DNA of 64,000 bases from Oculina patagonica. Lineage: Eukaryota. The DNA is taken from assembly GCF_052425735.1 (NCBI RefSeq), contig NC_135765.1:32240001-32304000 (forward strand), in the 5' to 3' direction. Below are positions 4,193-46,948 of this stretch, piece after piece. The notes under the pieces were generated by a model. The model made no database searches and was not told the DNA's origin. It saw nothing but the letters and a program-made list of their open reading frames with translations. The stretch's first letter is position 1. Every line of letters begins with the position of its first letter. A program made the translations under genes and the position numbers.

Positions 4193-6331
4193 CACACTTG
4201 GGGGCAAGTACATCTCCTTCAACTAATGTGGCAAATTTGAATGCTTTTTCAGATGCTAGAATGTCTAACTGTAAGATCAAACACATAAATACATAATATT
4301 AAAACAGTAAGTAGCAAATTATGGATTTGATGGGCTAACTGGAACACAGGGTCCGAACAATCTGCCAGCCAGTGAGCCTGATGCAAGCCATTTTGTTTAG
4401 CCTGTTGGTTAGACTAATCAAAGGCCTAAAATAGCTGTTTTGACTCCAGTTACACTACAGTTAGCTTAGGTACACATTGGTTTGCCTGACTAAATACTCC
4501 AGTTAGCCTAAATAGCACTGAGGTTAGCCTAATCCTTAAGGTAAAATGAACTTGTGTAACCGCAGCTACCTCCCCCCCCTGCCCTGGCGGTGTACTCCCA
4601 TTAATTTTGGATAGGGGTGTGCCGCGAGCCCGCGAGGGTTGTTAAACCCTGACCCTATTCAAGGACAAAGAAAGTGAAATTGATACCCTTTTTAAAGCCC
4701 AAAACCGAAAAATGACACCCAGTATTCAAGCGAAGGAGAAGCATTCCGTGATGACCCAAATAATGGCTAACCTTCGTAAAATCGCTTTACTAATACCTAA
4801 ACGGATAGTTCAGTTTTAAGATTCCCTTTTTTCGTTTAGCTGGGGTTTATTTTAGCTGATAGAATTTAGGTACCCTATCTAAGGATCACAAAAGGAACAC
4901 AATGGACACAAGGCCAAAAGGAGCAAAAAGGATACCCTATTTAAGGACCAAGAACCCCTCAAAAACCATACCCTATCCCCCGGCACAAACCTATAACGCA
5001 TATATGGGAGTACCCTCTCCCCCCCCCCCCCCCCCACCCATCTTCCATATTATTTGCTCTTTACAAAATGAGGAACTTTTTGAAAAAATAAACACCCTTA
5101 AAAAAAGATGCTTAACACAACTTTCATATCACTGATATACCTTGAAGTGGACTGTGCTATCAACTTTCGTCAGTTCAACCTTCAGGAATACCAAACCAAC
5201 AACTAGGTCAGGTGGATTGTAAACCAAATAACGCGTCATGGGCAGTCGAACTTTCTCACCATCTCCAAAGGTATACCACCAATTCCTACGAGTATAAACT
5301 GAATCCAAGGTAACCTTGGCTCTCACTGCTTGACAGCACCCGTACAGTTGTACAGTCAGGACCATATAGCCCAGTGGTCCAGTTCTGTTGAGACTTTGTG
5401 ATATGCATGTAGCTTTCCTGCAGTGGTCACTGAGGACGCATGTACTGTTGCTACCATAAGGTAACTGAATATCGGGGCAGTTATCTTGATGGTATCCTTG
5501 AAGGTTTTGAAGGTCATATTGTGTATGAGGCCATATTGGAGGTGTTGTAGGGTTGCTCGCTATAGTTGTGAGGAGAAAACAGCCCTATTATTTAAGTTTA
5601 TAATTTTTTTTTGGCTTAATAAGGTTGAGAAAACACTAAGCCGGCTAATTAACAAGCCCAGCTAGCTTTTCTGTCCTTGGCAGCTCTATAAAGTCCTTTA
5701 CACTTTCATGTGAAATTTAAGCTGGATTTTTAAAAGTTCTCTTTCAACCAGTGAAATTAGCCGGCAGCTGGCCCTTAGCTACAACCCTGAACCATTACCA
5801 TCGTGCTTGTGAGGTTAATTTCTGCTCAAATACCCTTCTCAAGTTCGATCGGATCTGTTAAGTTCCAGGCGACTTCTCTAATTTGCCCAAAGGAGTCTGG
5901 TATTGAAAAGTTTGTGCGAACATGCTTGGGTGCACGCTGTATTTACTTCCGGTTGACATAAATGGAAAATATTTGAATATTTGAAAATGTTTGTTGAAGT
6001 TTTATTACGACATTGCACTTAATTTGCGTCAGAAGTTTAGCTGTATCCTCGATTCCACGAATATTAAACCAACAAGCTTCGCAGTGAATATAATACTTTA
6101 AAAGTAAGCTACCATGCAAGGTGCCCGCGCGACGAGTTTTTATGCGTATTCAGCGAAGCGCGAAAAAATAAAATTTGTCTTCAATTACATGCAAGTCACG
6201 TAATTTGAATTCTACGGATCAAGTGACTAAAAATATCGCGAACACGTACCTCTTATGACTGTGGTGATGGCCAATATAAGACAAATTTTCGTTATTATAC
6301 TCTTGTTTTCAGCATACGCCATGGCCTCCAT
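4193..6331 (-). CDS. Array gene A (partial): signal peptide plus one six-Cys module; TM exon not seen
   Basis: Exons 6331-6250 (MEAMAYAENKSIITKICLILAITTVIR, phase 1), 5559-5141 (..HQDNCPDIQLPYGSNSTCVLSDHCRKATC...YGCCQAVRAKV...WWYTFGDGEKV...FLKVELTKVDSTVHFK, phase 0) and 4268-4193 (LDILASEKAFKFATLVEGDVLAPKC, phase 1). All introns are GT-AG, the frame is consistent, and the protein is homologous to genes B-D. Confidence 0.8.
4582..5035. mobile_element. MITE (GTACTCCC...GGGAGTAC terminal repeats)
   Basis: Imperfect terminal inverted repeats; related to the 7495-7921 element. Confidence 0.5.
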
Positions 6332-6369
6332 ACTGTTTGTTTGTTTGTTATTTTGACGGACCACTATAA

Positions 6370-6420
6370 TGACGTCAGTGCAATGGGTATAGTCACGTGA
6401 CGTTCATTAGTTATGAGTCA
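6370..6420. promoter_or_regulatory. Gene A proximal promoter motifs: CRE, CLEAR/E-box, AP-1
   Basis: TGACGTCA at 6370-6377, GTCACGTGAC at 6392-6401 and TGAGTCA at 6414-6420, all within 90 bp upstream of the ATG. Confidence 0.5.
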
Positions 6421-6429
6421 GACTTGTTT

Positions 6430-10064: not shown

Positions 10065-13000
10065 TTACAGCTCATTGTCCAGCCGCTGCATCCCATGCTT
10101 GTCTCGGCCTGAGAAAATGTCGACCATAAAGCGTGTACCATCCTGGCGTCTTTTATAACAAAAGAAGGCAACAAGAGCCAGTGATATCACTATAATGATA
10201 ACTATTGGCACAACAATCACTGCAGCTTTGACGCCGCTTGACTGTCTACTGAACCAGGTACCTGGGCAAACAAGAAGAAAAAGAAAAAAACAGCAATATT
10301 TAATTCAATGTACCATGCTGTATTCTCTGGAACTGATCTCATGATGTGAGGAAAACTGTATGATCTTTAAACGTTTGTCCTGTAGCTTTAAAATTTAAAC
10401 AGGGCTACGACATGGTTGTTGGTAGAATACATGATAAGGGCTCTTTCCATTAGTCAGAACTAAAGAGAGAACAAATTTTTATTTTGTCAAACACTGACCG
10501 CCCTAATAACAACAGAATTCTGTTCTGTTCTAATCGAGAACAGAATTCAGTTGGTAGTCAGATTCTTCCTGTCAAATCAGTCAGTGCATAAATATTATAC
10601 ACTGTTGTGGTGGATTTGTGGGAAAATCTCGTGGGAAAGGCCCGTTTCACATTCAAAACCACTGGACCAGCCGGCCAGTTCTGACTAATGGAAAGCGCCC
10701 AAGGTTAAGGTAGTGAAATGTCCTTTCAAAAATGCCCATCTCACAAACTTTAGCCAAATTTTAGGGGTCTCATCATCTCGAATTTTTTAGGAGGCCTTCT
10801 CTGAGTCTTTATTGCTTTTTCAAGGCTAAGAAAAATTCTTAGCCTTGCATTCGACATCTTTAAGGTTCTTCCATTCGACATCCTTAAGGTTCTACCAGTC
10901 AGAGTTCAAACCCTTTATAAAAATGGGATTTGAAAGTTTAAGTGACATAATATTCGCTAAAAAAGGTAAAAACATTATTTACAAGGCTAAAAAGTTATAA
11001 AATTTTAAAAATCATCATCAGAGTGATCAGAGTGATCATCATCACACATCGACTGAAAACGTTGGGTTCTTTTTAAAATTTTAAAACTTTTTAGCCTTGT
11101 AAATAATATTTTTAAAGTTTAAGTAGTTTCCAAGACTTTCAAAGCATGATCCAGTACTTGAAAGACACTTATTTGCACTAAGAAAACAAATACAACTAAA
11201 CAAAAATAAAAGCATCTTAACATGTGGTCTCAGTCCTCTTGAATTTCTGTTGATTAGGTGAATGTTTGTCCACAATTTTTGCATGAGAATTTCCTTCCAT
11301 TAAGAACAATAAAGCACCAATTGAAATAGCTTTTCAGTGACTTTCAAGGCTTTGACTGGTGGTACTCAAAAGTGAGTGGGAATTTTGAGGTAATATGACT
11401 CCTAATCACTATTTAACTGCTCTTTTAAGCTGCTATAGTGGTAAGATTCAAAACCTAAAATATCAACCCAAAAGATGAACTTGGAGATTCAGAAGTCCTT
11501 CTTAGAGTTCTGGTTGGGTTATGTCACTGACTGGTCAATATCATACTTATTAACCGGCATGCTTACCGCAATCATCAGTTGAGATAGGAAGCTCTCCTTG
11601 TAATAACACAGCATTTACCGGCTCAGTCTTATCGGCGATTGTCACCGTGCCAACAATCATCACCTAAGGAGATAAATTTATCCAATGTCATTCCAGAAAA
11701 TATCCATACCCTTCCCACAGAAGGCTTTTTGGTTTGAATCCCCCCACCCCTCTGGAAATTCCAGTTAAGCCTCAGACTTAAATTGCTTTAAAAATTGTGG
11801 CTTTTAAACCTCCCCCCCCCCCCCCCCACAACCCCACGTATTTTTAATGACCTTATGTGGGGTGGGTATGGATTTTTTCTGGAACTGCACAATCTATCTG
11901 AAGGCACAAAAAATTCTGGATTTAAGCCTAGTGGCAAATCAGGCTGGAGCTTATCCCAGTTTCTATAGCATGAAGCGACTTGAAGTACTTCTACTTCTCC
12001 TTGGATGGGTGCTAGTCCTGATTCCAGGGTTTCTGCTCCCGGCATTAATTTGCTAGTACCAGTTTGTACACTTGACTGGAGAGAGGCATTGTGAGTGTAA
12101 AGTGTCTTGCCAAGAGCAAAACACAAATGACCTGGGCCAGAGCTTGAATGAGAAACCTGACCAGGTATGATATAATATCTGTAATATTCAAACAAATAAG
12201 AATTTGTTACCCTGCCTGGCTATCAAAATTATGTTTTTTGTTGTTGTACTATTTTGCTATTAATGGGGCTATTAATTCATTTAATCTCCTTACTGTAAAG
12301 TTAACATTGTTTCCTTGCGTCTCCCGAAGTTTTACTTTTACGAACAAGGAGGCATCAGAAACTGGGATGCCACCAGTAAAACTGCTTGGTGGGGCTTTCA
12401 ACTTGGCTTTTTCTCCATCTTTAAGGGTGTGTGACCAGTCCAAACCACCTGTTTGCTGTATTGTAACTTTCGCAGTCAGTGACTTTTTGCATTTGTTTGC
12501 TTCAAAACCAACTGTTAACTTGTGACCTTCTGCTGCCACAGAACATTTAACATTGCTGCAGTGATCGCTGTAAACACATTTGCTTGGAGTATTAGGATCA
12601 CTTGGAATCATATCAACTGCTGGGCATTGTTTGGAATGATCGCTTCCATGTTCATCAGCTGCAGAATAAAATGTTGATCAAAAAAGGTAAATGTAATTTA
12701 TTTAACCATGTAGCTGTGCCACAACTGCTACCCCCCCCCCCCTCCCACCCAAAAAAAATTCTTGCTGGTCATCTGGTTGAAAAGAACTACCATATGTGAC
12801 TATGCTGTACTGTCTGTGTAGCCAAAAAGTGGTTGGTTGTAAAAATATCACATATTAAAACCTCAAATGCCTGAAATGCCCATAATATGGTCAAAATTTT
12901 AACATTATCTGTCATCCGTACATAACAGATATCCTGCGATATACGTAGGTTGCGAAAAATTGCCCAAAGTCTTGTAAAGCGCTGCACTGCATTACAGTAA

Positions 13001-16000
13001 AAAACGCATTCGAGTGCATTGTTGAGTTATATAAGCACTTGGGAATTTTAAGAACACGAGAGAAGTGCATTGCGCCGAGTGCTTCTCGCACTTCTCGAGT
13101 GTTCTTAAAAGTTAACAGGTGCTTATATAAACTCAATAATTCACGAGGAGTTCTTTTATGAAATGCTGAAGAAATTGCGCGCGCTAAAACTCGCGACGTA
13201 AGCAGCCTCCATTATAACTTGATAAAGCATGCACATGACGTATGCAGCGTGCTTTATGGGACTATAATGAGTTCAAATTGACCAATCACAGCACATGGAA
13301 TTCGTTGACCATTTTATAATGAATAATAAAACAATAATTATTTATCCTGCTCAATCTTGGTGCGGATCTAGGGGAGGTGCTTTAAGGTCAGAGGTCACGA
13401 TGATTTGACCCCTAAGTCACTTATCTGAAGGTCTGGATCTTGAACGAAACAGAAAATTTCAATGAACTACTAAAATTCTGCTTTAGTAAATCTTCACGAA
13501 CACCTGGAGACGTTTGCTAAGCAGAGATCAAGTCCATGGGCAAGAGTTGTTACCAGCAAGAGAGGGATGCACAGAAGGAGCTAGTGCAGGGCTACTACTT
13601 CTATATACAATATCACTATCAATTTAATATCACCAGTATTAATGAAGCTTACCACATTTGGATGCATGTAAATCTCCTTCAAGGAAAGTGACATTGTAGT
13701 GTGTGACGTCCGACTCAAACAACATCACTAACTTTAAAAACAACATAATATAAACAGTAAGTTACAATGGTTTTGATGGACTGTCTGGAACTTAAAATAA
13801 ACGGGACCTGCTACTTTTTGTCACTTTTTGCAAAACATTTCTATCTGTAACAAAACAATCATAATAACCCAGGGGGGGGGGGGGGAGAGGATCCCGTATC
13901 GGTATGAAGTGTCCATATTGCAGTTAATTTTTGATCTCGGTTGATTTTTTTAAATTAGTTAGGACTTGTTTTCATATTTCTTTACAAACTTCAACAAGAA
14001 CTTGAGAGCTTAATAAACTGGTGTTCTGTCCTTGGTGGGTGTTACTACCCATAGTAGCATCCCATCCATTTTGTTTCCAAATTCCAATTCAACCTGAATA
14101 TAGGAGCACATGAAAACCAGCTAGTGTTGAAGTGGCATTCTTTTTTTTAAATACAGCCAAATATACAGTAGGGCTGTAACGATACCTTTTTCATAATACG
14201 ATACATACCTCGATATAAGCGCCACGATACGCTTCACATTATGATACAACATTGCATACAATTGACAAGTGCTATAATTTTACTTAAGTCTATTGGTAAC
14301 ACAGTTTTTTCCACTTTATCAGCAGCAAAATCTTATTGCAAAGTGAAGTTCTCATAAACCGCATGTTTTTGCTTGTGGGCAAACAAGGCTGTGTCAGTCG
14401 AAAACTACTTGTCCCATCTTTAAAGAATACCTGATCAGACACAGAATGGAACTTCCTAGTCCCTAAGTTTAATAAATAGCCATTGAGGGCTTTGACATGG
14501 GTAAAAAGTCACTAAAAACAGTAATTTCTGAATGTTTATGAAGAATATATTTTATTGTTTCACGATACTGTGATATTTCGTTCAAATACCGATATTCGTA
14601 TCGTGACAAATAATATCACGATTCACCGGTGCACCTATCGTTGCAGCCCTAATATACAGTACCCATTTTATGTACTTAGAAATAAAATGGACCTTTCATC
14701 ATACCTTGAGGTGGACAAAGCCTCCATTTTTCTTCAGTTCTACCTTAAGGAATACTTTAACATTGGCAGGGGCTCCAGGTAGCGTGGGCAGTGCAGCTTT
14801 CTCGCCGTCTTTAAATGTATGTGACCACTCCGTACCACTATTAGATGAATCACCTGCTATAGATGATTCTGTATGAACTGTGGCTTTCACTGGTTGGTGG
14901 CATCCATAAACTTGCACAGTTAAGACCTGATGGCCAAACGGCCCAATACTGTCTGGTGGTGCAGTGCATATGACTTTGCTACAGTGGTCACTGTGCTCAC
15001 AGGTACCCTCACTGCCGTCAGGTAACTGAATATCTGGACAATTGTCTTGATGTTCTCCATGATGGCTGTGATGTGTTGGGGGTTGTGTTGCAGGTTCTAT
15101 TGTAGAGGGGCTTGCTATAGTTTTGAGGAGAAAATGGACCCCTTATACTTCAGTCTTTCAACTCTTCAAATGTGGTTTTAACATCAGCAAAATTATTGCG
15201 GTTTTCAGTGAAATGCGAACTCTGATAATAAAAATCCAACTAACGATTGCGTTTTTCGCTGCCGTCAGTCATAATTATGGTGACAGCCAATGAACCATGA
15301 AAAACAGAAACAAACAAAATGGATCAAAATCTACCAATCACAACTGAAGGATGTGACCTTTTGACCGGGTTGAAGTGAGCTCCTGTTTCCTGAGAGGTCC
15401 GCTAAGATGATTGATGGCAGCAAAAAGTGTAAACCGGTGATTGAGGATTGAATTTCAGAGTTCGCATTTCACTGAAAACCGCATTAAATAAAACAAACAA
15501 AAACATTAAGAACATCTTGCCAAAGTCTTACAAATATGCGAGGCAGCAAGCCATGTGAGGCATACGAGGCAATGCAGCAAGGAAAGTGAGGCGAGGCAGT
15601 AAGGCATGCCAGGCAAAAATCCCTACTCCCAATAAAGAGGCTAGCTGCAAGCTACCTAAGCTAACTGTAGGGTAACCGGAGTGACCTATCAATTGTTTCT
15701 CAGCTTCTGGGTGAAGCGATCAAGTTCTTTCTGTGAAATGAAAACAGATTAATTCTTATGTTTGAAAAATAAAATTATCACTGGAAATGTGTACTTTGCC
15801 AGTACTCGCAAGGGAATTTTTAAGGAACAGGGCTCGACAAAAAGTTGAATTCCAGCTTGCCCATGGGGCAAGTAACCCTTAAACTTTGCTTGCCCAGACA
15901 CTTTTCCCCCTTGCCCAGGTTCTTAAACTTATTAATTATTCCATTGAAAACCATTGCAAAACATTTGGAATGCATTTTGAGACATTGGGAACACATTTCA

Positions 16001-19000
16001 TCGAATCCGAAAACAGTTTGGAACAGTTTTTGCTGCAATTTATAATGTACTGCTTTGTTTCAAAATCGTTGTTTTAGATTAAGTTAATTGATGGTTTGCC
16101 TGGGCCCTTGCCCGTCGGGCAAGTAAGCATGAAAAATCACTTGCCCAACGGGAAAATCTACTTGTCCCGGATGACCGACGACCGGCCAGATGGGGGTTTT
16201 GGTGAGCCCTGAGGAATCACATGGTTTAATAATATACAAGGTCTTCCTGCTGCTAAAAGAATATGGTTATCCTACCTTATTTTAATCAACAAGTAGGCAA
16301 AGTTTGGTTGAAAATCTATGTTAAGTTCTATTTCAGGCAAATGACCTTAATAATTAGTTTTATATGAAGCTTACCACATTTGTAAGCATGTAAGTCTCCT
16401 TCCAGAAAAGTCACATTAGAGTTTGCATAATCGGACTTAATCAACTGCAGTATCTAGAAGAACAAATATTAACAAACCAGTAATTAGCTTTGGCCTTTCT
16501 GGGAAAAGTTGGCATTCATTTCAATATACTCAAAATGCCAAAACTAAGGGGATGGCTATCACCATGGGGCAGGTGGGAGGGGGGAAGGGTATGAACAGAG
16601 AAACCCATATTACAGCCAAGCTAGACAAATTAATTTTGCTTCGTACCTTCACTGAGCTTTTTGTCTTCATTAGCAGTTAATTGCAGCAACAACAAAAACA
16701 AAGGCCAGAAGTCATAGCCCATTACATACATGAGAGGTAATATGTAACTGGGCAGAGTACCCCCCCCCCCCCCATCTCCGGGGGAAAACTCCCATATGAA
16801 AGGGATGGGAATTGTTTGTCTTGCATAATTAGAGCGGTTTTTCACTTGAGTGGCGAAAGTAAATTGCGTTTGCTTTGGTTTTGCATTACTACGCTTAGTG
16901 ATTGGTTTAAAAATCTCGCGCCACTTTCTCAGCCAATCAAAACTAAACCAAAACCAATCGTGACTTGCTTGCGCACGTTTTCCCGCACTTCGTGTCAGCT
17001 ACATGTATTTGCTTCGAGTTTTGATTGGTTCACTGGATTGTCTGTGTCCTTTGTGATTGGCCAGAGCAATTACTTTGGTTTTGGTTTTACGACACTCAAC
17101 TGAAAACTGCTCTATGGGCTGATACAGATTGCAGGTTTTGGCCCTTTTCAGTGGTTTAAACCAATCAGACATGTAAAATGGTCTCTTTTAGGGGTCAGAA
17201 AAGATGGGGCCATGCTCACATAGGTCTCCTTTTTCCAGGAGGGGGATTTAAGGTTCCAACAATGTATCACCATCCTTTTCACATTACTAGACTAAATCAA
17301 ACTTTCCACTAAAATGAGGAACTTGATGGATAAACTGACCAAAAGTAACCTAATTAATTTAATTTATTTCTTGCGCATTACATTAAAAAATCTCAATGCT
17401 CTTACAAGAAAATAACGAAAAATAACGAAACAATATTAAAGAAAGTAGATAAGATATTTAAATTACAATAAGATTAAATATTAAATTCATTAAAATACTA
17501 AAATTCATTATAAAATTCTAAAATTCGTAAAACATTACTAAAATTCATTATAAAATTCTAAAGTTATTAAAAGGTCATTATTGAATAAAAACGTTTTAAG
17601 CTTAATTTTAAAAGTGTCAACTGCTGGAGCACAAAAGACTTAACATCTCTGTAAGACAAAAATTGTTTTACACCATACTCTACCTTGAAGTGGACTAAAT
17701 TGTTGCCATTTTTCTTCAATTCAACCTTCATGGATACATTCATACTGTCAGGAATACCCGGCATAGGGAACGCAGCCTCCTCTCCATCTTCAAATGTATG
17801 GGACCATTTAGGGCCACCCTGAGATGGTTCTATATCAACTGTGGCTTTTAGTGGTTGACGGCAAGCATTTGCCTGTACAGTTATTTTGCTAAATGGTCCA
17901 CTGCCAGGTGGTGCAGTGCATGCGACTTTGCTGCACATGTCACTAAGGACGCATGTTCCATTGCCAGCATCGGGTAACTGAATACCTGGACAATTGTCTT
18001 GTGTTGGAGGCCCTGTGGTAGGCAGGCTGGCTACAATTTAAAGGGGAAAATCGAAGGGTCTAGTTATTTAAACAATCTTCTATAAAATGTTGATTGAGGT
18101 TTTCTGGCTTAACACACTGTCACTAAATATGAGAGGAGAACAATATAACTCAAAAAAACTGAATACTGTTAAAACTGGCTAAGGTAAATTTTTAATCACA
18201 GTTTAAAGCCCGAGAATTTTGAAATTTTCCCATCCGCTTGACAAATACTTTCCCATTTATACTCTGTAGGAGACGATATTGTCTTGCTAAGGAACACAAC
18301 AAACCTGGGTTGCAACCCGAACCTCTTGATTAAGACACCACTAGACAGAGGCCTTTCAAGGGGTAAAAGCAACAAGCGTCATGACCCTGAATACTGGCGA
18401 CACAGGAACATTTTAACAGCAACAAGCGACATCATAACGGCACGGAAATGTGACAGCGACACAATGCAACAGCAACATAAAAGGGTGTAAAATGACAGTG
18501 ACATTTACATTAGGCGACATCAGCTCTCAGAAACATGCGACATTGAGACAGGGCTACCCTTGGAAGGCCTCTATGCAAGTGATTGTTTGTTTGCTTGCCC
18601 CTAACAATTTTTTTTATTTAAATTCATATCAGCATGAAATTAATAATTTATTGTAATTTGAGCCGTAAGATTCTTTGTAAACTCAAGATCAGCTCCACCA
18701 ACACGTGTAAAAATCACACCACAGTTATATATGGGTTACCCCTCGGTCAAGTTTTTTTTTGCCTTCATATTGAAGTATTGTTAACTATATTAACAATATA
18801 TTATGATATTAAAATATTTTCATTCTCTCGCAAAAATTGCGTCGTTAGCAGTACTGTACACCATTAAATTTTTGGCAAGCAACAATATTTTCCCAGCTAT
18901 CTGAAGCTTAATTTTCATACAAACGCTTGCACCATAGTTTGTTATGATTGCAAGGCTAAAACTCTTCTTTTAGAAACCGTCACGAAAGTCTTCATTTGCG

Positions 19001-29019: not shown

Positions 29020-29341
29020 TCAAACAACAAGCCCGAACCTTTTCTTGCGGCAAGGACTACAACAACAGCAGCCACAACAGCAACAGCCAGAAATGATTGA
29101 CAGGGCCAGTAACAGAAACACCAGGATCATTACTATGCGTTCAGCGGTGTTACGGGATTCCCACCAGCGAACAAAATCTGTAAAAGGAGGTAACATCACC
29201 ATTAGCGCGTGATCAAACGAGCTGGGGATAGGCAAGGGTCAGACAAGTCCTTAGGCGTTCTCGACTTAAGGGAGTCTGGGCTTTATCATGACCGGTTACG
29301 TCACCGTAGAGCACTCGCTCTTGCCCGCTCCCCGACCTCGG

Positions 29342-29390
<49 letters not shown>

Positions 29391-32300
29391 TCTTTATTGA
29401 AACACAATCAGGTTTTAAGCACAATTCTTGTGCGGTCGTGTGCTAAACTAGCTTAAACTAATATAATACGAATATTACTGCTATATATACAAATATATTA
29501 CATTGGATCGTATTTACTATTAAAATAAGCACTTATATAACAATTAGTGACATTTAATGCCGTAGTAATGTCTGGGGTGCGTCTGAACTGACTGGGAATT
29601 AAACGACTACACTGACTGGTCGAACATAGAAATATGTAAAAAAGGACTAATTTCCCCAGTTCAAAGTTCGATACTTAACAAGTATTCTGATAGTTTACTA
29701 ATTTTTTTCGAGCTTTACTGAAAAAATTCTACGTGTTTTAAAACAGATAAATACGGACTTGTCGACGCCATTTGTCAAAGTATTCGGTTTGGTTGTGGAG
29801 CGTTAAGAAAAGAAAAATACACGCTTATTCGAGGGAATGTTAATATATTTACAATCAGCAACAATTTATCTATCCTTACTTACACAGTCGAAGCTCTCTT
29901 AACGGACACTCTCGTAAGCGGACAGCTCTACTTACGGCCACCTTGTTAGAAACCCCGTTTTTACTCCCATACAAACTCTGTATTTTAACATTCTCGTAAG
30001 CGGACATTCCCGTAAACGGCCGCGGACACTTTCAGAGATTACGACTTAGACTTTTTCTTTGTTTTTAAGCTCCCGTAAGCGGACACCGCAAAGAAAATCA
30101 TATAAAAAACCTCTGTATCTTGTATTAATCAATCAACTTCACATCGCCGTTCGTCACAATGATTTTACTGTAATTACAGTACCATATTTCAGTGTTTGTT
30201 TTGTCGTCATCCACGTTCGGTTACATTTCGAAACACCACCAACATGCATATTACCATAATGTTAGCTGGGCAAGCTCCCGTAAGCGGCCATCTATCCCCT
30301 ACACCTCTAGTGGCCGCTTACAAGAACCATTCTCGTAAGCGGCCAGGTCCAGTTGCGGACACTTTTTTCGCGTCCCGAGGGTGTCCGCTTACGAGAGCTT
30401 CGACTGTCCTTCTCTTTGTAAATATATTAAGCGAAATACCCAGAAATAGAAAGAAAAACTGTCTTAGACGTTTGACCGCGGTGAAACCCGCTCCCGTCCT
30501 GGACTTTGCGTGGAGACCGAAATAAGAGAGAACGCCTAGGGACGTCTAGCCTTTGCAAGGGAATGTGCCTGTCAAACCAGCTTGTAAGTTCTACTTGACT
30601 CCCATGAATATTTTAGCAGGTTCACATTCAATGAGAATGGGGCTATAGGGTTGATGTGAGCCCATGAGAGTGAGTGTCAAACGAGAGCAAGGGTCTTGAA
30701 TAGGCCTGATTTCCGAGTTACCCTTTGCCTCTGTTTCAAAACGAATCTACGTGCAAAACCATTCAAATGAAAATGAGTTTGATTTGCATGAAAATAGACC
30801 TGTAGGTAAAACTCATTTTCATATGAATGGTTTCACACTTAGACTCGTTTTGAAACAGAGGCAAAGGATAACTCGGAAATGGCCTATCAGACCATGATGG
30901 TGTCATATAAGCCGTAATAAAGTGTATTCACTTTCTCCTTACCGCAGTAATCCGTAGAAATTGGTAGCTCCTGTTTAACAAGTTCTAACTTCAAAGGAAA
31001 GAAAGAAACTGATCCAACTTTAGTTCCTCCTTCCAGAGTTACCTGAATATGAAAAAAAAAAAAATTCTTTAAACTTGAAATATTAGTGTCTTGATAAAGT
31101 GTTTCACACTGGCACAGGCGCGTAAAAATCTCGTCTGTCGGTAACAACTGAGCACGCGGTGTGTCAGTGAGGTTACTAAGTTACGAAGTCTTATGGAGTA
31201 ACGCTCACGTGACAACTTTCGGGATATTCACGAGCACTCGCGCTAACTTTTGATTGGATAAAAAGAATCGGAACTTTCCGAGTGTTTTGAGCGATTTTAC
31301 GAAGATTTGTCTAAAAAGGCGTCGGTACCTTGGTTGCCTATATTGATTGTATTGTCGCCCGAAACACGTGATGTGGCAACGTGCGCGTGTGAGTTCAACG
31401 TAGCTTGATACAGTGTATGGGTTATTTTGCAGTTTATTTGCGTCGGCTTTCGAGCTTACGTCATTAAGACTTGCTACACCGTGCTGAAGAGCTCCAATAA
31501 GAGCGAAACAGCTGTCTACGGTTGCAATCCTGCTCTATCGGTTCTAGTCGTGTTGGTATGTCACAAAGTCTGCTTTTCACATAGTATGGTCAACCTTGCA
31601 GTTTTGTTTGTTATTTCATTTTTTCGACGTTTTTGCTTGTTTACAAGCTAAAAACGTAGAATAGGGGTTAGTGGACAAAATTTGGAACCACATATTTGTA
31701 AACTCTCAAGGGACTTTTTTAATTTATCAAGGGACTGTTTTTATTTCTCAAGGGATTACTTTCCGCTGTGGGTGATCACTTGCGATCTCGTGGAAAAAAC
31801 GTGACTTGTCACATTTACAAACGTTATATAACAATTTTAAAAGTGACATGTCAGCTTTCTTATCTCAACGCACGTGTGTCTGAAAGGCGATCTATAAAAA
31901 GCGTCGCACAAACAATGGATTGCGTAACTAAAACACGAATAAATAATCACTAGCACTTACATCGCGTTGAGAGCAATGTTGCATGAATCGGCTTTACAAC
32001 ATGCGATCGTATCTACGCAGTTCGAGTGGAATTTCAGTCAAAGACAGCAAAATTCTTTCGTATTTCATCTTCAAATATAATTCGAAAGCATTCACTGTAT
32101 ATATGGCTTTTGTTTAATCCTGGGTCTTGATATCCGACCCTCGCAGAGCCTAGACAAAACGCAGCTTGAGTGTAACGATTTGTTTACGCCCCAATTATAT
32201 GCGCAATGTTTTCTCCGACAGTAGTCGGAAATATCCGTATTTTTTTTCGTGCTTTTTTTCGACGTTTTTGCTTGTTTACAAGCTAAAATGGTAGAATAGG

Positions 32301-38300: not shown

Positions 38301-41300
38301 CTTGTAAACATTCCTTCGTGTTGGGCTCGCATAAACATTGCAGCCGAGATTGCGCAGTACGGACTGGAATTCATCTTTAAGTTGTACAAAAATTCCTATT
38401 TTGAACACAGATGTCACTTCCGGAATTTCTCATCTAAAATTCAATTGGTATTTAATTATAATTATTCGAAGTTTTCATTTTCGAGTCATCTTTTCATTCG
38501 ATAGCATTACTGATCTCGTAAAAAATTCCATTCAAGTTCACACCAATACTGTACATTGCCAATGTTTTGCTGACGTCTTGAGAAGTGTCTTACTAACGTC
38601 ACTAGTCAAATCTAAAATATATCCAAACCAAGTTGTGCAAACATTCTACTCTTTGTGACAGGCGACTTTGACGCCCAACTGTGCGGAAATGAAAATCGAC
38701 ATACTTCTTGTTAAATATATAAAAAATAGTTTTAAAGTGGAGTCCGCCTCAAAAAAATGTACCGCCAGATCACACTGCTATTTGTAGAAACCAGCAAAGC
38801 GTCTAGTTTCAAAGTTTCCCACAAAAACATTGCGTGACATGAATGACGTTACCCCTTTTATTTACAAAAATAGCTTCAACTTGTCAAAGCAACTACAGTT
38901 TCACAATGGTGATTATTAGTACTTTACCCGTTAAGCTTTTTTCTCTGTCCTCCCGCCGAAGCAAAGAAGAGAACCAGATTGCAGATTAGCCCAAAAGTCG
39001 ACCCAGTGTTCCTACAACGATTTACTGTCAAAACTGAAATGAAACCGATTGGCCCAGGCTATCCCCGTCATTTTTAGCCGACAGAGGACTATCGTCTAGG
39101 ACGACCAAAGGGTAAACTATAAATCGGCCACGCCCGATTAATAAGTTCAGCAAAAACAGTAAAGAAAAACAAAAATATGGGAACAAGATACTATTACAAA
39201 AAGGCCTACTCTGGGACCCAAAGTCGCCGTAACTTTGGGCGACTTAAGGCGACTTTAGGCGATTTTAGCTTATTTTGTCCAAAATAACGGGCAATTTAAG
39301 GCGATTTTGGGCGACTTTAGGCGACTTTGGGCGATTTTGAGCGACTTTAGGCAATTTTAGATGACCATTTAGGCAATTTTAGTTGACCGACCTAAGTACA
39401 GTTGTGGTATACATGTACATGGGAATCATCATGGTTCACCATAAAGCATTGTTACAGAAAATATCTATACTTAGAGCGACTTTGGGCGACTTTAGGCGAT
39501 TTTGGGTCCCAGAGTAGGCCTACAAAATCAGTGTGAATGAATTCTTTTAAAAATCTAATTTGCATAAAGCCCAAAATGACAATAATTTTCCCAAAACATT
39601 TCAAAATTTCCATTTTTGTACCATTTTCTAAATTTTGTTCCTTCTTTAATAAATAACCAACCTTAAAAATATTAATTAAACCTTTCAGTAAGTAATTTGG
39701 CAATATGCTCTCATAATAAAGATTCTGGCTGGCGGCCATTTTGAAAAATACCCCTTCCCCCCCGGAAACGATCATATCTAGATTGCCTATAATCTTTAAA
39801 ATATTCCTCATGACTTATAATATAAGTGTGCCAAGTTTTATGCTTTTATCACAAAGTGCACGATTAGTCCCTAAAATGACACTTATCCACTGGACTATTG
39901 AACACATTGAACGGCGGTCTACCTATAACAATTCAAATATAGCGTCGCAAAAACAAAGCGTCGAACGCATATTTTGCTGTTTCATTTGCTAATTTCGCTG
40001 CCGTAATCGACTGCCTCGAAAGGTCCTTGCAGTTTTAAAGTATAGAATTGTCAGATCTCGCTGAAATTTGCACTGTTTATTTGTGTAATGTTAAGGAATA
40101 TGTGTATAAATACCCGGCGCGAACGACCCATTTTTGACAAAATTAAATGGCTGCATTTCCTCCGCGAAGATAGGAAATTGTTAAATTAAACTACAAAGAA
40201 ACTGTAATGATAAGTTCGAAGAACAATGCACAGGATAAACCTTCGACTCATACTTCATGCAAAAACGTCGATATCTCGAAGAGACTTTGATTCGTGGAGC
40301 AATCGTAACGATACGGCCTTCAACACATTGAACAGCGGTCTACCCGGCTATAACAATTCAAATATGGCGTCGCAAAAACAAAGCGTCGAACGCATATTTT
40401 GCTGCTGTTTCATTTGCTAATTTCGCTGCCGTAATCGACTGCCTCGAAAGGTCCTTGCAATTTTAAAGTATAGAATTGTCAGATCTCGGTGAAATTTGCA
40501 CTGTTTATTTGTGTAATGTTAAGGAATATGTGTATAAATACCCGGCGCGGACGAGCCATTTTTGACAAAATTATATGGCTGCATTTCCTCCGCGAAGATA
40601 GGAAATTGTTAAACTAAACTACAAAGAAACTGTAATGATAAGTTCGAAGAACAATGCACAGGATAAACCTTCGACTCATACTTCATGCAAAAACGTCGAT
40701 ATCTCGAAGAGACTTTGATTTTGCTGATCAGATCTCTCAGCAGATCCTACGAATAGCAGCATTATCGTTTGCGGTCTCTTGCTGTTTTAGTCTTACTTTT
40801 ATATTAATACGCGTATTTGATTCAAACCTTCAGAGTAAGCATGCCATCTTCTTCCGGTTCAACCGTGACTCTGATAAACATTCCTGCCTTGGCGATGTTT
40901 TTGACGTCAATACCCAATCCTGGAACAGCCAGTTCGTCACCGGAAGTGAAAACGTGTGTCCAGTCGATGTCTTCTCCTTTAATTTTCACGTTGATTGTCA
41001 CGGTTACCGGTTCGTCGCACCTGGAAAAGAACATTTATTTCTGTAGTAAATAATAAAGATGGTAGATTTTAAGCTCGGTGATAAATAGTGAAGAATATTA
41101 TTCTACATGACACGAGCGTGGGACAAAGAAAAAATCTGAGTCCCCGACGGGAAACGAACCCATGGCCTCCCAAATACCGGTTGGGCGCTTTAACCAAGTC
41201 AGCTACGTGAGACTCGTTGTGAGCTGGGCCATTTACTAGGTTGATAAGTGACACGCGTCCTGCATACTGCTAGGATCAGCAATGTCGAAATCATCAAATT

Positions 41301-44300
41301 TGTAGTAAATAATAAAGATGGTAGATTTTAAGCTCGGTGATAAATAGTGAAGAATATTATTCTACATGACACGAGCGTGGGACAAAGAAAAAAATCTGAG
41401 TCCCCGACGGGAATCGAACCCATGGCCTCCCAGATACCGGTTGAGCGTTCTGTGTGACTTATAACATATAAAGCAAAGGGTGTTGGCATAATTACGTGGT
41501 ACTGGGATATCGTTTTAATCCTGGACGGAGTCAGGGTTACAGCGAAACCATTGCTGCGGCTCCCCGGACCCAACTTTGTATCTTCTTGGGGCCCGAAGAA
41601 ACGCACCAAAATTTCGACCCTATTTTCCTTGATATGCTTATTCTGGCACGGCTCCCCAAGCCTGTAGTTACTGTTTTCCGATAATCAATCAATCAATAAA
41701 ATTTGTTTACCCTCGGAGCTGACAGGGGCTGACTACTGGTCAAACAAAAGAGAGCTATGGGAACTACAAAATGACAAAATGTAAGTGACAAGCGGTAGTT
41801 CAGTAACAAAAATGGAACGCGGAGGTAAATTTGGAGTAATTTGTGGGAATCGGCCGCAGACATATAAAACTTTTTTCTTGTAAAAGGTAGCTCAGCAAAA
41901 GCAGTGTGGGAATGTGGCGGGGGGGGGGGGGGGGAGCAAGGGCACATAGGTGGAGACATGGGGGGTTGAAATTAATAGGGAGTTTTTATTAGCAGCCAGC
42001 TGGCCACATAAGCTTAATATTTTACTGGGGGATGGGTAGGGGTGCTGTCGAGAGAGAGATGATCAGTCATTGAATTTCCGAGTTTCGATGTTGTTGTTCT
42101 TTACAGCCACAACAACCTGTCATACCGGTTAATAGTTCCTGTCAAAGTGGTGGTTTTCCCGCCAAAGTCAGCGCTGCACGTGATTTTCAGGCAGTCAGCT
42201 GTTATGCTACAGTCTCCGGGAAGATCCATCGATTTGCATTCGTCATTTCCCGCCAAACCGTTCGCGATCTTCTCGAAGAGTTCGTCCAACTTCTTGGTGG
42301 CAGAATCTGTTAGAAAACGTGTATTGATTAAATTAAATGGGAAGAGTTAGTCATCATGATCAATTTGTTTACCCTCGAATTTTGCAGAGTAACTAGCCTC
42401 TTCTGCGAGGATGGGGCGAAAAGAAAGCGAGAAGAGAAACGGCCGGGGGGGGGGGGGGAGAAGGGGAGATTCCTCACCCAGGCTCTACTCGGATTAGGAG
42501 CGGTAGCTTATACAGCTAGTATCTCCGAGCATTTAATTCGCAATACACGGCACAGTGGGCAAAGACCAAACCACAACACCGGGTACTCCATGCCCTACTC
42601 TTAACGATACAGTCAACTCTCTCTTAACGGATACCTCTATACTGAAGACGGACACCTGGTGATGGTCCCTGCCGTTTTTTAGTCATTTTACTGTAACCGA
42701 ACTCCCCAGAAGACGGACACCTCTCTTAGACGGACAACGGACACTTTGAAATCATTAACGGACACTTGAGAAGTGTTATTTATCATGTTTTATCAGTGAA
42801 AATACTTCCAAACTTCGTATCGACCTAAGGCAAAGTTAGTCAGCGACCTAACGTGTATACCAAGCTTACTAACCACAAACAATGACGCTTTACGGATTAC
42901 TTCTCTGCTTACGTGTAGGGACACTCAAAAGGTCGTTTCTACTTACAGTATTACAGTTTGTAGAAGCTCTCAATTTTTGCTTTAACAAGCAAATACGGTC
43001 CCTATATTCCCGGCATAACAAATCGAACCCAATCGAACTAAATTTCAATCGAACTCAATCGAACTCAATCGAACTCAATTCATGGATTGAGTTCGATTGA
43101 GTTCGGCAATCGAACGAAATCGAACTCACCTAAAAGAAAAAAAATAAATCGAACCCAATCGAACGTTCGATTTTCGAACTCGTGATTTGTGGAAAACAGG
43201 CGTTGAAAATCCATAACCAGATCTTGGAAGCTCGAGTTACTTCAGCCCAGAGTGTAGCGCACGTGTTTTTCGTAAACGAAGAAATACTGCAGAAATGGCT
43301 TCAGATGCGATGTGGATTGTAAGCTTCAAATGTGTAGTAAAAGGCTACCAGGAATGCCACTTTGACGTAAAGGATGGCGAAGTTTTCAAGGTTTGAAAGA
43401 AAATAGGCGAGAAAGGCCGTGCATTCCGAATTGTAAACGAGCGCATCTTGACACTCAAGAATTAAATTTAACTTTTAATTTTGACCTGTGGAGAAAAATT
43501 ATTTTCGCTGTTGCATTTACTATTTGTCCTTTCTATCATGGCAGTAATTATAAGATGCTTCCATACATCCAATATACTGACGCTCGTTCACCTCTTACTC
43601 TCTTGGTCACTGTTAATTGTCCAAGATGAATTTGAGAGAATCATGTATATCGTTAGTAAGATATTTATCATAATCATCCATCTACTGTACGCCGTTGCCT
43701 GTGTCGCGGTTAGTAATTTGCTTGTATTTTTGACTAAAAGTAACCCATCGAGTTGTCTTTCCGCAATTGCAAGTTAGCTAAAAAGGAAAGAGTACAACGA
43801 TTTCGGAATACGCCCGTGGGTATAATGATAGCTTTGTTCTGTTCTGTTTTTTTCTCTTAACTGCCGTGGACAGTTTATAAATGGGGTTTCTATTATTGAA
43901 TAAATTGTAAAAAATTTAAAGCACGAGAAAAACCTGCTTTGATGGGCTTGCTTTGTACATCCAAATTGGTCGTTACTATTCCAGACGACCTGCAACTTAC
44001 AGACCCAGAACGATCCGTTCTCAGCAAAGGACTTTCTTTGCTTTGTATTGGTTTACCAGAGCCAATCGAACGCAATCCATTTAATTGTGTTCGATTGAGT
44101 TCGGAAACCGAACTCAATCGAACACAATCAGATGGATTGAGTTCGATTGAGTTCGATTTGTTCGATTGAATTCGATTTGTTCGGAAATCGAACTCACTGA
44201 AAGTCTGGTGTTCGATTTCGTTCGATTGCCGAACTCAATCGAACTCAATCCACGGATTGAGTTCGATTGAGTTCGATTGTGTTCGATTTTCGAACGTTCG

Positions 44301-46948
44301 ATTAACTATGCCGGGCTTTATTATTTTAGTCTAGCAGAGGCTTGTTGCATTGTGCAAAGGTATAGCTTTATTACCCCGACTCTCTACAGAGCGGACACCT
44401 CTCTAAGATGGACAGCTACAGCCGGTCCCGAAGGTGTCCGTCTTGGTGTTACTGTTTAATTTTTTTTAAAAAAAATGTTACTTAACCGTGTAATGTTTTG
44501 CATCGTGTGCGCGAAACTGTCACCATCATCCAGCACTTTTGCAACCGTTTGTTTTTGTTCTGCAATAGGTGTTGCTAGAGTCGACGTAAACATTTTAATC
44601 AGCTTTCACTTGTGCGCACGCGCCCAAATTGTAGAGTCGAACAAATTGATGCCATTGCGGTATAAGCTGTGAACAAGTCTGTAGAAAAAAGCATTCGCGC
44701 TCTCTCCGTGCATATATGTACTGTCCCCTGATCGCCGAATTTTTGTTTGCCCTAACCCCACTATAGGGAGGCCATCCAGGCTATTGTTGTATTTTATTCA
44801 CTGATCTCTTCCTATATCCTCATAAGCTGGATGAGGGTGCTAATGGGGTTAACAGTTAACTGATATTTGGCCAAAAAAATAGTAGTTAACTGATAAATGA
44901 AACGTTTACAGTTAAGTGTCATTCCCTTAATTATACTGAATACGATTGTTGTTGTTAATAAAAGCAACAAGCTTTTTCCTAACAGCAAAGCTATTTCGTG
45001 GCATTTACCTGCCCGCTGCGTGACCAGGTGACATATTAACTGTAAATATGCGAAAGGTACAAAGGTCGTATCAGGCACATGTTGATCTCTGTATTGGCGT
45101 CAAATGGGGCGTAGTCAAAGTTATTCTAAGTTTTTATCGACATGATGACAAAGGATCGGCATTTAAACGACACATGTCGCGTACTCTTTGACATGGCAAA
45201 GCACAATTCAATGGACATAGCTTGTAAACATTTGTCGACAAGTGAAAAAGTTTGGACTTGGTGTATTGGACCTTAAGTTGTTACCTACAAACAATGGCTG
45301 TCACATCATAATAATTAGTGCTTGACATACGCACCCATTACAAGCCCACTGAAACATTTCAGTACAGTTATCACTCCTCGTGTCACCCACCAGGAGTTAA
45401 GGAAGTTTTATCAATGGGGAGGCCTTAAGACTGCTTAGAACAAATTCCTCTAAAAGAAAATTTGGAGGAATCCGTCCAAGGGAAAGGCCCTGGGAACGAG
45501 GTTGGAAAAAGCAAGCACTTCCGGTCACATCTTATCGAGAGAGGTTACCCAGAATGCCTAGTCTAAAGAACTCTGGCGGAAGTTAATTTTGAAACAGGAA
45601 GTAGGCCCTCCAACCAAAACTGAAAACAAACGAAAACATTTTGCCTTTTGTAACGCAATACCAACCAGCAGTACCAAACACAGTCCAAACTTGAAGAAAA
45701 TACATGTACTTATGAAAAATTGGCATTCGATAGAACAACAACCGTTGCACAAGAAAATATTCAAAGAACCTACGCTAATATAATACAAAAGGGGTAGGTC
45801 TCTCAAAGATATACTAGTAAGATCGAAACAATGAAAATGGCTAATACACGTGCGTGAGAGTCGTGCATGCCTATCAATTTATTGTTTTTTTCCACTGACG
45901 TACTGAAGTAAAGAAAATTCAGGTTATAAAATAATAAAAATAATAACTATGTGTTTATAGTGGTCATGCACTTAGCTTCATATCTCAACGAGATAGCTAG
46001 TTTATAGGCATGCCACTGAAACAGGGGAAACAAATAATTTATAAATGAACATAACAAGGTTAAAAATCCCAACTGGCAGGAGGCGGACCAGTTGGCTATA
46101 TACAAAGCGTGGTCGAGGATTTGAGCTCGGGACAACCGAGAAACAAATCCAGCTAGTGGCAAGGGCAGGCCTCGAACCGGTGACCTACGGATTACAACAC
46201 CAGCGCCCTAAACCACTCGGCCACGCTTGCCTCCTTATGACGCAATAATTTTCGCTGTAAGAAAATCGGTAACTAAAATTAGTAGTTAACTGACAACTGA
46301 CCAAAAAAATAGTAGTTTACTGACATTTGGCCTAAAAATTAGTAGTTAACTGACAATTGGGTACCCCCATTAGCACCCTCCTGGATACTTGCCTTTGTTT
46401 CGATCATTTGATGAGAAATCGGATTTTCATCACTTTTAGAATTGAAAGTGTTCTACACGATCCTCGTGTATTAAAGATACAGTTGGAATTTTATCAGATG
46501 GATGTTTATATTTACGAACCATACTTGACCAGTCACAACTTGTCGCCGATCGGCACAGTCAGAGCGTGTGGCGGGCAATTTTCGTTATATTCGTGATATT
46601 TTAAAAAAAGTAACATTGATTTTTCCTCTTCTGTTCTGTTCCGATCTGTGACATCTAATGCATTTTGAAAACAAGTTTGACCCTTCTTAGGTACTAACGA
46701 AATTGTGCCCACTTTACGAGTTAGTTTTATATTTGTATGCTTAACACCACGCGCGAATTTTTGACCCGAGGTTAAATTTTGTAATTGCCTGCGTTCCGCA
46801 AAGCCTGACACATCAGTTCTGAAATATCAGTAAAGCTTAAAAAATACATTAGAAAGAAGATAAACTTACTTTCATCGTGGGACGCACTGCCTTCCCAGAC
46901 AAGACATACAATGAGAAAAACTACCAACACAAACAATTTCTCGGCCAT
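29020..46948 (-). CDS. Array gene D: ~236-aa type I membrane protein with one six-Cys module and a Cys-string tail
   Basis: Exons 46948-46870 (MAEKLFVLVVFLIVCLVWEGSASHDE), 42306-42126, 41020-40828, 31042-30943 (VTLEGG...KQELPISTDYC) and 29177-29020 (WWESR, TM, CCCCGCCCCSPCRKKRFGLVV*). Total 711 nt, phases 1/2/0/1 consistent. Intron 3 (9.8 kb) is TE-filled. Confidence 0.82.
29343..29390. repeat. (CAT)n microsatellite
   Basis: About 16 perfect CAT/ATC units. Confidence 0.95.
29885..30406. mobile_element. Tc1/mariner-type MITE
   Basis: CAGTCGAAGCTCTCTTAACGGACAC / GTGTCCGCTTACGAGAGCTTCGACTG. Confidence 0.7.
30700..30887. mobile_element. Palindromic MITE (second copy at 57506-57692)
   Basis: ATAGGCC..TTTCCGAGTTACCCTTTGCCTCTGTTTCAAAACG / CGTTTTGAAACAGAGGCAAAGGATAACTCGGAAATGGCCTAT. 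Confidence 0.75.
31147..31615 (+). mobile_element. Probable Penelope-like element pseudo-LTR fragment
   Basis: Non-coding GC-richer block carrying the minimal hammerhead typical of PLE pLTRs. Boundaries are approximate. Confidence 0.5.
31471..31527 (+). ncRNA. Type I minimal hammerhead ribozyme (Penelope-associated type)
   Basis: Stem I accgtg/tacggt (extended by ttgc/gcaa), core CTGAAGA, stem II gctc-caataa-gagc, GAAA, palindromic stem III acagctgt, and a GTC cleavage triplet ending at 31516. Confidence 0.8.
31620..32860. repeat. Near-identical tandem duplication, period ~614 bp
   Basis: Identical 61-aa spurious ORFs (one substitution) at 31768 and 32382. Confidence 0.9.
35714..36210. mobile_element. 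MITE-like element built of CTAGGGTTACCCTAG palindromes, nested in Academ
   Basis: Clusters of tagggt(t/a)accctag at both ends; starts TTA-GGGCCTGTTTACA. Confidence 0.55.
39203..39520. mobile_element. TIR element with ggcgacttt subterminal repeats, nested in Academ
   Basis: TIR GGCCTACTCTGGGACCCAAA; flanks TACAAAAA / TACAAAAT (7 of 8 match, likely TSD). Confidence 0.75.
39900..40720. repeat. Tandem duplication, period ~428 bp
   Basis: Matching sequence at 40226 and 40654. The second unit preserves the pre-insertion site of the Academ element. Confidence 0.9.
41043..41447 (-). mobile_element. Two tandem copies of a tRNA-derived SINE-like repeat
   Basis: Unit starts at 41043 and 41302 are near-identical. 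The minus strand shows A-box-like TAGCTGACTTGGT and B-box GGTTCGATTCC. The same family occurs at 54303-54511. Confidence 0.65.
42610..44454. mobile_element. Mariner-type MITE containing a nested 1.3-kb TIR element (43009-44315)
   Basis: Outer ends CAGTCAACTCTCTCTTAACGGA / GTCCGTCTT..ACTG. Inner ends CCCGGCATA / TATGCCGGG, with (aatcgaactc)n subterminal arrays. Confidence 0.65.
45330..45870 (+). mobile_element. Degenerate Penelope-like RT C-terminal fragment
   Basis: Remnant reading HYKPTETFQY..HSSCHPPGVK..GEALRLLRTNSS..HLIERGYP..KNWHSIEQQP, with stops and frameshifts. Confidence 0.75.
45990..46232 (-). mobile_element. tRNA-derived SINE
   Basis: Minus-strand head GGCAAGCGTGGCCGAGTGGTTTAGGGCG...GGTTCGAGGCC with Pol III A and B boxes, followed by a non-tRNA body. 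Confidence 0.65.

Follow-up and report, generated by a model that had tools for sequence, protein, structure and literature searches.

A tandem gene array in the stony coral Oculina patagonica encodes putative single-pass membrane proteins built from an unnamed six-cysteine module of wide animal distribution

Several described systems resemble, in one respect or another, a gene array that we have analyzed in the stony coral Oculina patagonica. The Alr genes of Hydractinia, for example, form a tandem cluster, encode single-pass membrane proteins that vary in how many extracellular modules they carry, and likewise belong to a colonial cnidarian. LAMP proteins are glycoproteins that cross the membrane once in type I orientation; their luminal part holds one or two all-beta domains, disulfide-bonded and joined by a hinge rich in Pro and Thr, and their short cytosolic tail ends in a sorting motif. 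Exon-shuffled modules such as EGF, CUB, and LDLa offer a parallel in gene structure, namely phase 1-1 boundaries, tandem duplication, and the joining of a module with EGF_CA, and DUF4773 (PF15998) offers one in domain type, being all-beta, of similar size, endowed with conserved cysteines, and found in secreted or extracellular proteins. The coral array lies in a window of 64,000 nt, by which we mean the whole stretch of DNA analyzed (NC_135765.1, positions 32,240,001-32,304,000), and it occupies positions 4193-46948 of that window. It consists of four neighboring minus-strand genes, head-to-tail in the order D, C, B, A, whose putative products are built from one module of ~140 residues and six cysteines.

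Taken as a whole, the array is best explained as encoding type I surface or endosomal glycoproteins that belong to an old, unnamed domain family and that would be acylated and sorted through their tails; we put the probability of this reading at roughly 0.6. The gene models on which it rests were built by hand with every junction read by eye, and they show intact open reading frames (ORFs) and GT-AG splice sites at all 16 junctions (Table 1). The limits of the feature are exact, since 46948 is the first base of the gene D ATG and 4193 the last base of the third exon of gene A. The first exon of each of the four genes is hydrophobic, of signal type, and closes in phase 1, and the last exon of B, C, and D carries the motif W(F/W)xx(Q/R) followed by a transmembrane helix, cysteines, and a basic patch. 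The first-pass annotation of this DNA had described a tandem array of intact paralogous genes for receptor-like proteins with a signal peptide and a single membrane pass, as well as a shared last exon in B, C, and D, and our models, motif and ORF scans, and alignments bear out both points.

A six-frame scan of the window with a hidden Markov model (HMM) of the family recovered exactly the six module copies counted at the outset, one in A, three in B, one in C, and one in D, all on the minus strand and at E-values of 1e-10 to 1e-42. The next best segment in the window scored E 0.27, so that the six-copy result is far beyond chance. Among the five first exons that hold this part of the module in one piece, which are 34-62% identical to that of module B1, 19 columns are invariant (C,P,P,C,S,D,C,C,C,A,V,W,T,D,G,E,K,V,L), including five cysteines, an S-D pair, W..T..DGE, and KV.L. 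The six cysteines probably form three disulfides. The description as a six-cysteine module holds in general, although module A1 has seven.

Each module is encoded by a long exon (phase 1 to 0) and a short exon (phase 0 to 1), giving a cassette with phases 1-0-1; in gene D, an additional phase-2 intron interrupts the first part. Because the cassette is symmetric, with phase 1 at both ends, its duplication or transfer leaves the reading frame intact, and this neutrality accounts for the three copies in B, the two in A, and the presence of a paralog fused to EGF repeats. This last protein (P0013; XP_078374222.1, LOC144657747), encoded on another chromosome-scale contig of O. patagonica, has a module resembling B1 (78% identity) in fusion with Ca-binding EGF repeats, and its C-terminus is a hydrophobic stretch similar to a glycosylphosphatidylinositol signal. 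It is a clear case of phase 1-1 cassette shuffling, and the EGF_CA partner, whose Pfam match is confined to the separate C-terminal part, places the module in extracellular company. The module differs from the classic shuffled domains in having an internal phase-0 intron and in matching none of those families.

A search of animal proteomes with an HMM had been suggested from the start; as run here, a profile of five of the window's modules was compared with 1.84 billion cluster representatives, of which 133 matched at E<=1e-3, 52 at E<=1e-10, and 13 at E<=1e-30. Long bacterial Cna-B-like repeat proteins among the matches (P0011, P0033, and similar proteins, up to E 6e-33) were spurious and were excluded: they cover profile positions of about 55-107 only, repeatedly, through a W-S-Y-T-W-K-D-L-P motif that resembles WSHTFKDGE, and such motif-repeat matches could mislead automated family building. 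The list of named members, drawn up after the removal of these proteins, comprises stony corals (Montipora, Pocillopora, Orbicella, and five species of Acropora), sea anemones (Actinia, Actinostola, and Nematostella, the last with the pair A7SFP2/A7SFP3), and deuterostomes, namely the hemichordate Ptychodera, the echinoderms Amphiura, Patiria, and Holothuria, and the amphioxus Branchiostoma. In the deuterostome members, two or three modules are combined with a transmembrane helix. All named members are labeled uncharacterized or hypothetical, and no vertebrate occurs among the matches that carry names. A word-indexed homolog search with the family alignment, in which 807 candidates were scored, added two proteins. 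The array had at first been thought lineage-restricted; presence in Scleractinia, Actiniaria, Hemichordata, Echinodermata, and Cephalochordata, and hence across anthozoans, ambulacrarians, and amphioxus, shows that the family is not. As judged from these matches, the module defines an old and unnamed animal domain family.

The absence of a name is borne out by comparisons with Pfam profiles and solved structures. No Pfam profile matched at E<=10 in seven exon translations from the window, ten full-length relatives, or 115 aligned family modules, and thus neither the families with which the module had originally been compared, namely Ig, EGF, CUB, TSP1, MAM, LDLa, SRCR, and lectins (C-type lectin included), nor ZP has a Pfam match to it. 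The best result of a profile search of PDB sequences was E 0.1 over a stretch of 28 residues. AlphaFold2, given the family alignment, predicts the gene A module as an all-beta meander of nine strands (predicted local distance difference test score, pLDDT, 80.7; predicted template modeling score, pTM, 0.75) and the third module of the Ptychodera protein as the same fold with an N-terminal helix (pLDDT 90.5, pTM 0.84). Foldseek, likewise proposed at the outset together with structure prediction, found no relative for these two confident models, with template modeling scores (TM-scores) of at most 0.32 against PDB and at most 0.42 against Swiss-Prot models; among the 48,161 chains compared by VIA-align, the highest Z values were 7.1-7.3, for overlaps of 61-64 residues, which is the stated background of the tool. 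The coral and hemichordate models both superpose on the same cnidarian cluster model of the ESM Atlas (TM-score 0.73-0.74), which supports homology across phyla. The coral model also matches A0A2B4SBQ3 of the AlphaFold DB (TM-score 0.72), a protein whose family membership is taken on this match alone. Literature searches under the accessions of family members (UniProt, LOC, XP) and under species names brought up nothing of relevance. The module is, therefore, a genuinely unnamed domain, with no Pfam model, no solved relative, and no literature.

One alternative classification carries some weight. The module may be a divergent DUF4773, in which case the family would possibly form a remote branch of that catalogued group; we place this a little short of even odds, and, as a matter of classification only, it is compatible with a family of sorted surface or endosomal glycoproteins. 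Ranked by language-model features, DUF4773 comes first among named families for a coral module (12 of 100 matches, score 0.77), for a full-length coral protein, and for the hemichordate module, where the score is 0.79 with 173 shared features and the ten best named matches all agree. In addition, a Foldseek search of AlphaFold DB clusters returned two DUF4773 representatives at a probability of 1.0 and TM-scores of 0.47-0.49, and oyster and copepod proteins with EB or EGF domains reach a TM-score of about 0.55. However, the TM-scores of the DUF4773 representatives are below 0.5 with E of about 0.02, all of the ESM feature scores are below 0.9 and are leads only by the calibration of the tool, DUF4773 clusters are absent from both ESM Atlas shape searches, and the PF15998 profile is among those with no match in the sequences scanned above. 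The two groups also differ in distribution and anchoring, as DUF4773 proteins are secreted and mostly from arthropods, whereas the family members recovered in this analysis are for the most part membrane-anchored and come from cnidarians and non-vertebrate deuterostomes. DUF4773 has no assigned function, and because the literature holds only incidental mentions of it, one in each of three papers, homology would not in itself provide one.

Comparison with deposited proteins bears on the models of single genes. Gene A encodes a protein that matches GenBank KAL9965761.1 exactly, as it does residues 1-192 of RefSeq XP_078381659.1 (P0135). The third exon of gene A ends at 4193 in a phase-1 GT donor; the KAL9965761.1 model reads through this donor and stops two residues later, whereas the 404-residue XP_078381659.1 splices from it to a second module and a WFSRQ, transmembrane, and basic tail outside the window. 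Proteins A and B are 45% identical over 386 residues, with A1, A2, and the tail of A paired with B2, B3, and the tail of B. The different tail that the first-pass annotation had assigned to gene A is, therefore, an artifact of the window edge, because the RefSeq model continues beyond it with the shared tail; the variation in module number stands, with one module in C and D, two in the full gene A, and three in B. Model C aligns end to end with P0010 at 61% identity, and model D with P0076 at 55%, both without a gap at any predicted junction. The source contigs of P0010 and P0076 measure only 1516 and 963 nt, against genomic spans of 3-18 kb for the Oculina genes and 4.5 kb for an Acropora digitifera ortholog, and we therefore infer that these contigs derive from cDNA.

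Table 1. Genes and exons of the array, listed 5' to 3' on the coding (minus) strand; positions are those of the window, C1-C6 are the module cysteines, and E-values are from the family HMM.
Feature	Position (strand)	Content	Support
Gene D	46948-29020 (-)	5 exons, 236 aa, 1 module	
Gene D exon 1	46870..46948 (-)	ATG and predicted signal peptide (MAEKLFVLVVFLIVCLVWEGSA...), phase-1 end	GT donor
Gene D exon 2	42126..42306 (-)	First module part, C1-C4, CKSMDLPGDCSITADCLKITC, phase-2 end (D-specific intron)	HMM E 1.5e-10
Gene D exon 3	40828..41020 (-)	Module middle, C5, DWTHVF..GDE, ..LTLK, phase-0 end	HMM E 2.6e-19
Gene D exon 4	30943..31042 (-)	Last module strand(s), ..LPISTDYC (C6), phase-1 end	Colinear with transcript-derived ortholog P0076
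Gene D exon 5	29020..29177 (-)	FVRWWESR, predicted transmembrane helix, CCCCGCCCCSPC cysteine cluster, RKKRFGLVV, stop	
Gene C	27005-23762 (-)	4 exons, 262 aa, 1 module	
Gene C exon 1	26945..27005 (-)	ATG and predicted signal peptide (MATKSWWIFLLVACLLSAVS)	
Gene C exon 2	24936..25333 (-)	Acidic N-terminal stretch and module part 1: C1-C5, WSHTFKDGE, LKVGLKK, HFK	HMM E 1.2e-42
Gene C exon 3	24394..24499 (-)	Module part 2 (..LLDGKISLSTKNC, C6)	
Gene C exon 4	23762..23985 (-)	FSAWFNKQ, predicted transmembrane helix, CCC..C, basic patch, RVPMQRLINEE tail end, stop	Aligned with P0010
Gene B	19311-10065 (-)	8 exons, 552 aa, 3 modules	
Gene B exon 1	19227..19311 (-)	ATG and predicted signal peptide	
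Gene B module 1 part 1	17684..18030 (-)		HMM E 3.1e-34
Gene B module 1 part 2	16375..16453 (-)	..FLEGDLHAYKC	
Gene B module 2 part 1	14705..15114 (-)	With Thr/Pro/His-rich linker	HMM E 1.9e-34
Gene B module 2 part 2	13653..13731 (-)	..FLEGDLHASKC	
Gene B module 3 part 1	12294..12658 (-)		HMM E 2e-36
Gene B module 3 part 2	11567..11663 (-)	..LLQGELPISTDDC	
Gene B last exon	10065..10261 (-)	TWFSRQ, predicted transmembrane helix, C-Y-KRR, tail end GMQRLDNEL, stop	
Gene A	6331-4193 (-)	3 exons and 1 module inside the window, partial protein	
Gene A exon 1	6250..6331 (-)	ATG and predicted signal peptide	Identical to KAL9965761.1 / XP_078381659.1
Gene A module 1 part 1	5141..5559 (-)		HMM E 1.2e-29
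Gene A module 1 part 2	4193..4268 (-)	Phase-1 GT donor at end; gene goes on past window start	

A maximum-likelihood tree of 48 modules places the array in a longer history. The tree splits cnidarian from deuterostome modules (support 100/99). Oculina D falls with transcript-derived D types and Acropora LOC141892171 and LOC114977117 (99/98), the gene C module with P0010, a transcript of a second coral (100/98), and B3 with A2 and module 1 of A. palmata LOC141892163 (100/99). A further clade holds A1, B2, B1, and P0013 (99/97), with B1 sister to P0013 (100/98). Family members carry neighboring locus numbers in A. palmata (141892163/165/166/171) and A. millepora (114977108/117/118), the D-type genes falling inside these runs, and a locus of A. 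digitifera contains two of the genes side by side in tandem; it is on these adjacent numbers and this one locus that cluster membership in Acropora rests. Orthology in the tree and the Acropora locus numbers together indicate that a cluster of subtypes predates the split between Oculina and Acropora. In A. palmata LOC141892163 (P0158/P0014), a B3-like module comes first and a B2/A1-like module second, the reverse of the order in Oculina A and B, which indicates that cassettes have been rearranged and not just duplicated. We also noted a 4,001-nt JGI contig that carries, at positions 3-2680, two intronless family ORFs (256 and 276 aa) on the same strand and 1.1 kb apart, from two genes that are also tandem in the A. 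digitifera locus; it is either a read-through transcript of cluster neighbors or an assembly chimera.

The locus had also been proposed to be diversifying, and this is not seen at the level of genes. Nei-Gojobori estimates for the closest paralogous modules give ratios of nonsynonymous to synonymous substitution (dN/dS) of 0.25 (B1-B2), 0.44 (A1-B2), and 0.53 (A1-B1), with dS of about 1, and Acropora orthologs differ between species at 3-10% of residues. These values indicate old duplicates that evolve fairly fast under purifying selection. As read from the tree and these ratios, the cluster is a set of ancient subtypes under purifying selection, with a few local duplications.

What might such proteins do? 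The predicted proteins carry N-glycosylation sequons and Thr/Pro/His-rich linkers, and these, with the signal peptide and the order of modules and then transmembrane helix, point to a type I topology with the modules outside. Features that recur among cnidarian members are a juxtamembrane C-G-x-x-x-W-W/F motif, a group of two to ten cysteines where the transmembrane helix meets the cytosol, which are candidate S-acylation sites, and a basic patch. In most cnidarian subtypes the tail ends in (S/T)K-V-P-M-Q-P-L-V-N-E-x, often after PPSY, a PPxY-type WW-domain ligand. Gene C of the window keeps the end motif as RVPMQRLINEE and gene B as GMQRLDNEL, while PPSY occurs in sister subtypes outside the window. 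From these recurring tail and juxtamembrane features, we take the products to be binding proteins of the cell surface or of endosomes, with tails on which sorting or adaptor machinery would act. In this scheme, the proteins would sit in the plasma or endosomal membrane with their modules facing outward or toward the lumen, and the modules would form a binding surface for a ligand. S-acylation would take place on the cysteines clustered on the cytosolic side of the helix, and the short tail could be read by cytosolic sorting or adaptor proteins through its S/T-K-V-P-M-Q-P-L-V-N-E end, with PPSY perhaps providing a further signal for such proteins in the sister subtypes.

The likeness to LAMP proteins is architectural only. 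No family member scanned matches PF01299 or PF21222, and the listed fold matches include no LAMP chain; LAMP has four cysteines where the module has six, and the tails end in ..QRLINEE, ..QRLDNEL, or ..RFGLVV, not in GYxxI.

Several observations weigh against a family of acylated, tail-sorted receptors. In gene D the tail motif is missing, which leaves the cysteine cluster and RKKRFGLVV, and gene B has retained the motif just in part. The tails of deuterostome members are unrelated to those of cnidarians, and thus a mechanism based on the tail may apply to no more than some of the cnidarian subtypes. Signal peptides and transmembrane helices were called by eye and from hydropathy only, and gene models B, C, and D are predictions, with transcript-derived proteins aligned to C and D. 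Moreover, every functional step, from topology and glycosylation to acylation, sorting, and ligand binding, is inferred. It is nevertheless tempting to take the scheme further, and to suppose that an ancient and hitherto undescribed metazoan extracellular domain superfamily, founded by the module or joined through it to DUF4773, gave rise in anthozoans to a conserved cluster of acylated receptors that sense or take up an external partner such as microbes or symbionts, with PPSY and VPMQPLVNE coupling them to ubiquitin-ligase or adaptor-based endosomal sorting; we regard this extension as speculative and rather unlikely in its full form.

Other functions have to be weighed against that of a sorted glycoprotein receptor, and each of them appears less probable still. 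The module might form a barrel that carries or senses a small hydrophobic molecule at the membrane, such as a lipid, sterol, or pigment, instead of acting as a receptor for proteins or glycans, since its only whole-domain structural neighbors are antiparallel meander barrels (FABP/CRBP, YceI-like, SAHS, nitrobindin, OlmO, and DUF1934/DUF1579/DUF3108, with TM-scores of 0.3-0.55 or Z of 5-6.4 over 93-123 residues). These generic barrels lie within the noise range of the tools, however, where even the best Z belongs to the partial VIA-align matches mentioned above and Foldseek E exceeds 0.05, and modules with three disulfides and EGF partners more typically serve interactions outside the cell. 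We consider this idea improbable.

A polymorphic self/non-self locus with variable modules, comparable to Alr and serving allorecognition or the recognition of symbionts or microbes, would fit a tandem set of type I membrane proteins that vary in module number. It would also fit the strong divergence of the modules between conserved anchors (16-62% identity) and the impression, gained by inspection and uncounted, that differences between species are commoner in the ectodomain than in the tail. Yet the subtypes are old, with orthologs in both Oculina and Acropora and across more than one coral suborder, and the family also occurs in solitary animals such as Nematostella, sea stars, and amphioxus. 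The paralog dN/dS values and the modest distances between Acropora orthologs are far from Alr-like hypervariability. Ig domains appeared to be missing from the array at first sight, and no Ig-family Pfam match was found; the predicted fold is a nine-strand meander, not an Ig sandwich, and the tails contain no ITAM- or ITIM-like motifs. The analogy with Alr is one of layout, and a recognition locus of that kind seems very unlikely here.

Marginally weaker again is a role in the extracellular matrix or in biomineralization, which is suggested by the Asp/Glu/Tyr-rich N-terminus of the C type and its similarity to coral acid-rich proteins. An acidic stretch does open the proteins of gene C and its orthologs (EGEGESRDYRDVYEYDEDEDGEE in C, reaching DDDDDDGD in P0010), but it is short and occurs in one subtype only, the proteins carry a membrane anchor, and the family extends to anemones, which do not calcify, and to deuterostomes. 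The Swiss-Prot fold search listed no reviewed coral skeletal protein. Finally, the possibility that the array consists of decayed ORFs or ORFs derived from transposable elements that align by chance, for which TE-rich surroundings might speak, is refuted by intact ORFs, canonical splice sites, dN/dS below 1, cross-phylum conservation, and transcript-derived orthologs, and retains a negligible probability.

The surroundings of the genes deserve brief mention. Coding sequence makes up 3,736 of the about 42,750 nt of the feature, and the heavy load of transposable elements claimed earlier is plausible, as judged from scattered elements. On the minus strand at 491-2539, a 682-aa ORF has a gag-like DUF1759 domain (E 5e-12) and is probably from a retroelement; because it lies between the exon ending at 4193 and the remainder of gene A outside the window, it must be within a gene A intron. 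Three runs of N, 641 N in total, interrupt a low-complexity stretch with Ser/Pro/Leu coding at 2945-3700. A tRNA-like element (RF00005, 36.9 bits) at 41145-41207 (-), in the second intron of gene D, is the only match in an Rfam scan of the window at gathering thresholds, and the repeated peptide shared by the open segments at 41072-41269 and 41331-41684 near it suggests a tRNA-derived short interspersed element. The third intron of gene D holds two pairs of 300-nt direct repeats, each 98% identical, at 39975-40702 and 31716-32629. Between C and B, a fragment of a reverse-transcriptase zinc-binding domain (zf-RVT) at 22473-22847 (-) scores E 1e-05 and 26.5 bits, just under the Pfam cut-off of 27.5 bits. 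Upstream of D lie an exon that resembles a sugar transporter of the major facilitator superfamily (Sugar_tr, E 2e-15) at 54735-55130 (-) and an ORF with an SDHD/CybS domain (E 7e-07) at 59133-59594 (-).

What had been taken for a lineage-restricted recognition locus thus becomes an ancient, unnamed domain family in a conserved cluster. The module is well conserved from corals to amphioxus and has a confident predicted fold, and defining it would annotate more than 100 protein clusters now labeled uncharacterized in reef corals, anemones, echinoderms, and cephalochordates. For coral biology, the array provides a conserved cluster of membrane-protein genes with candidate roles in uptake, adhesion, or host-microbe contact.

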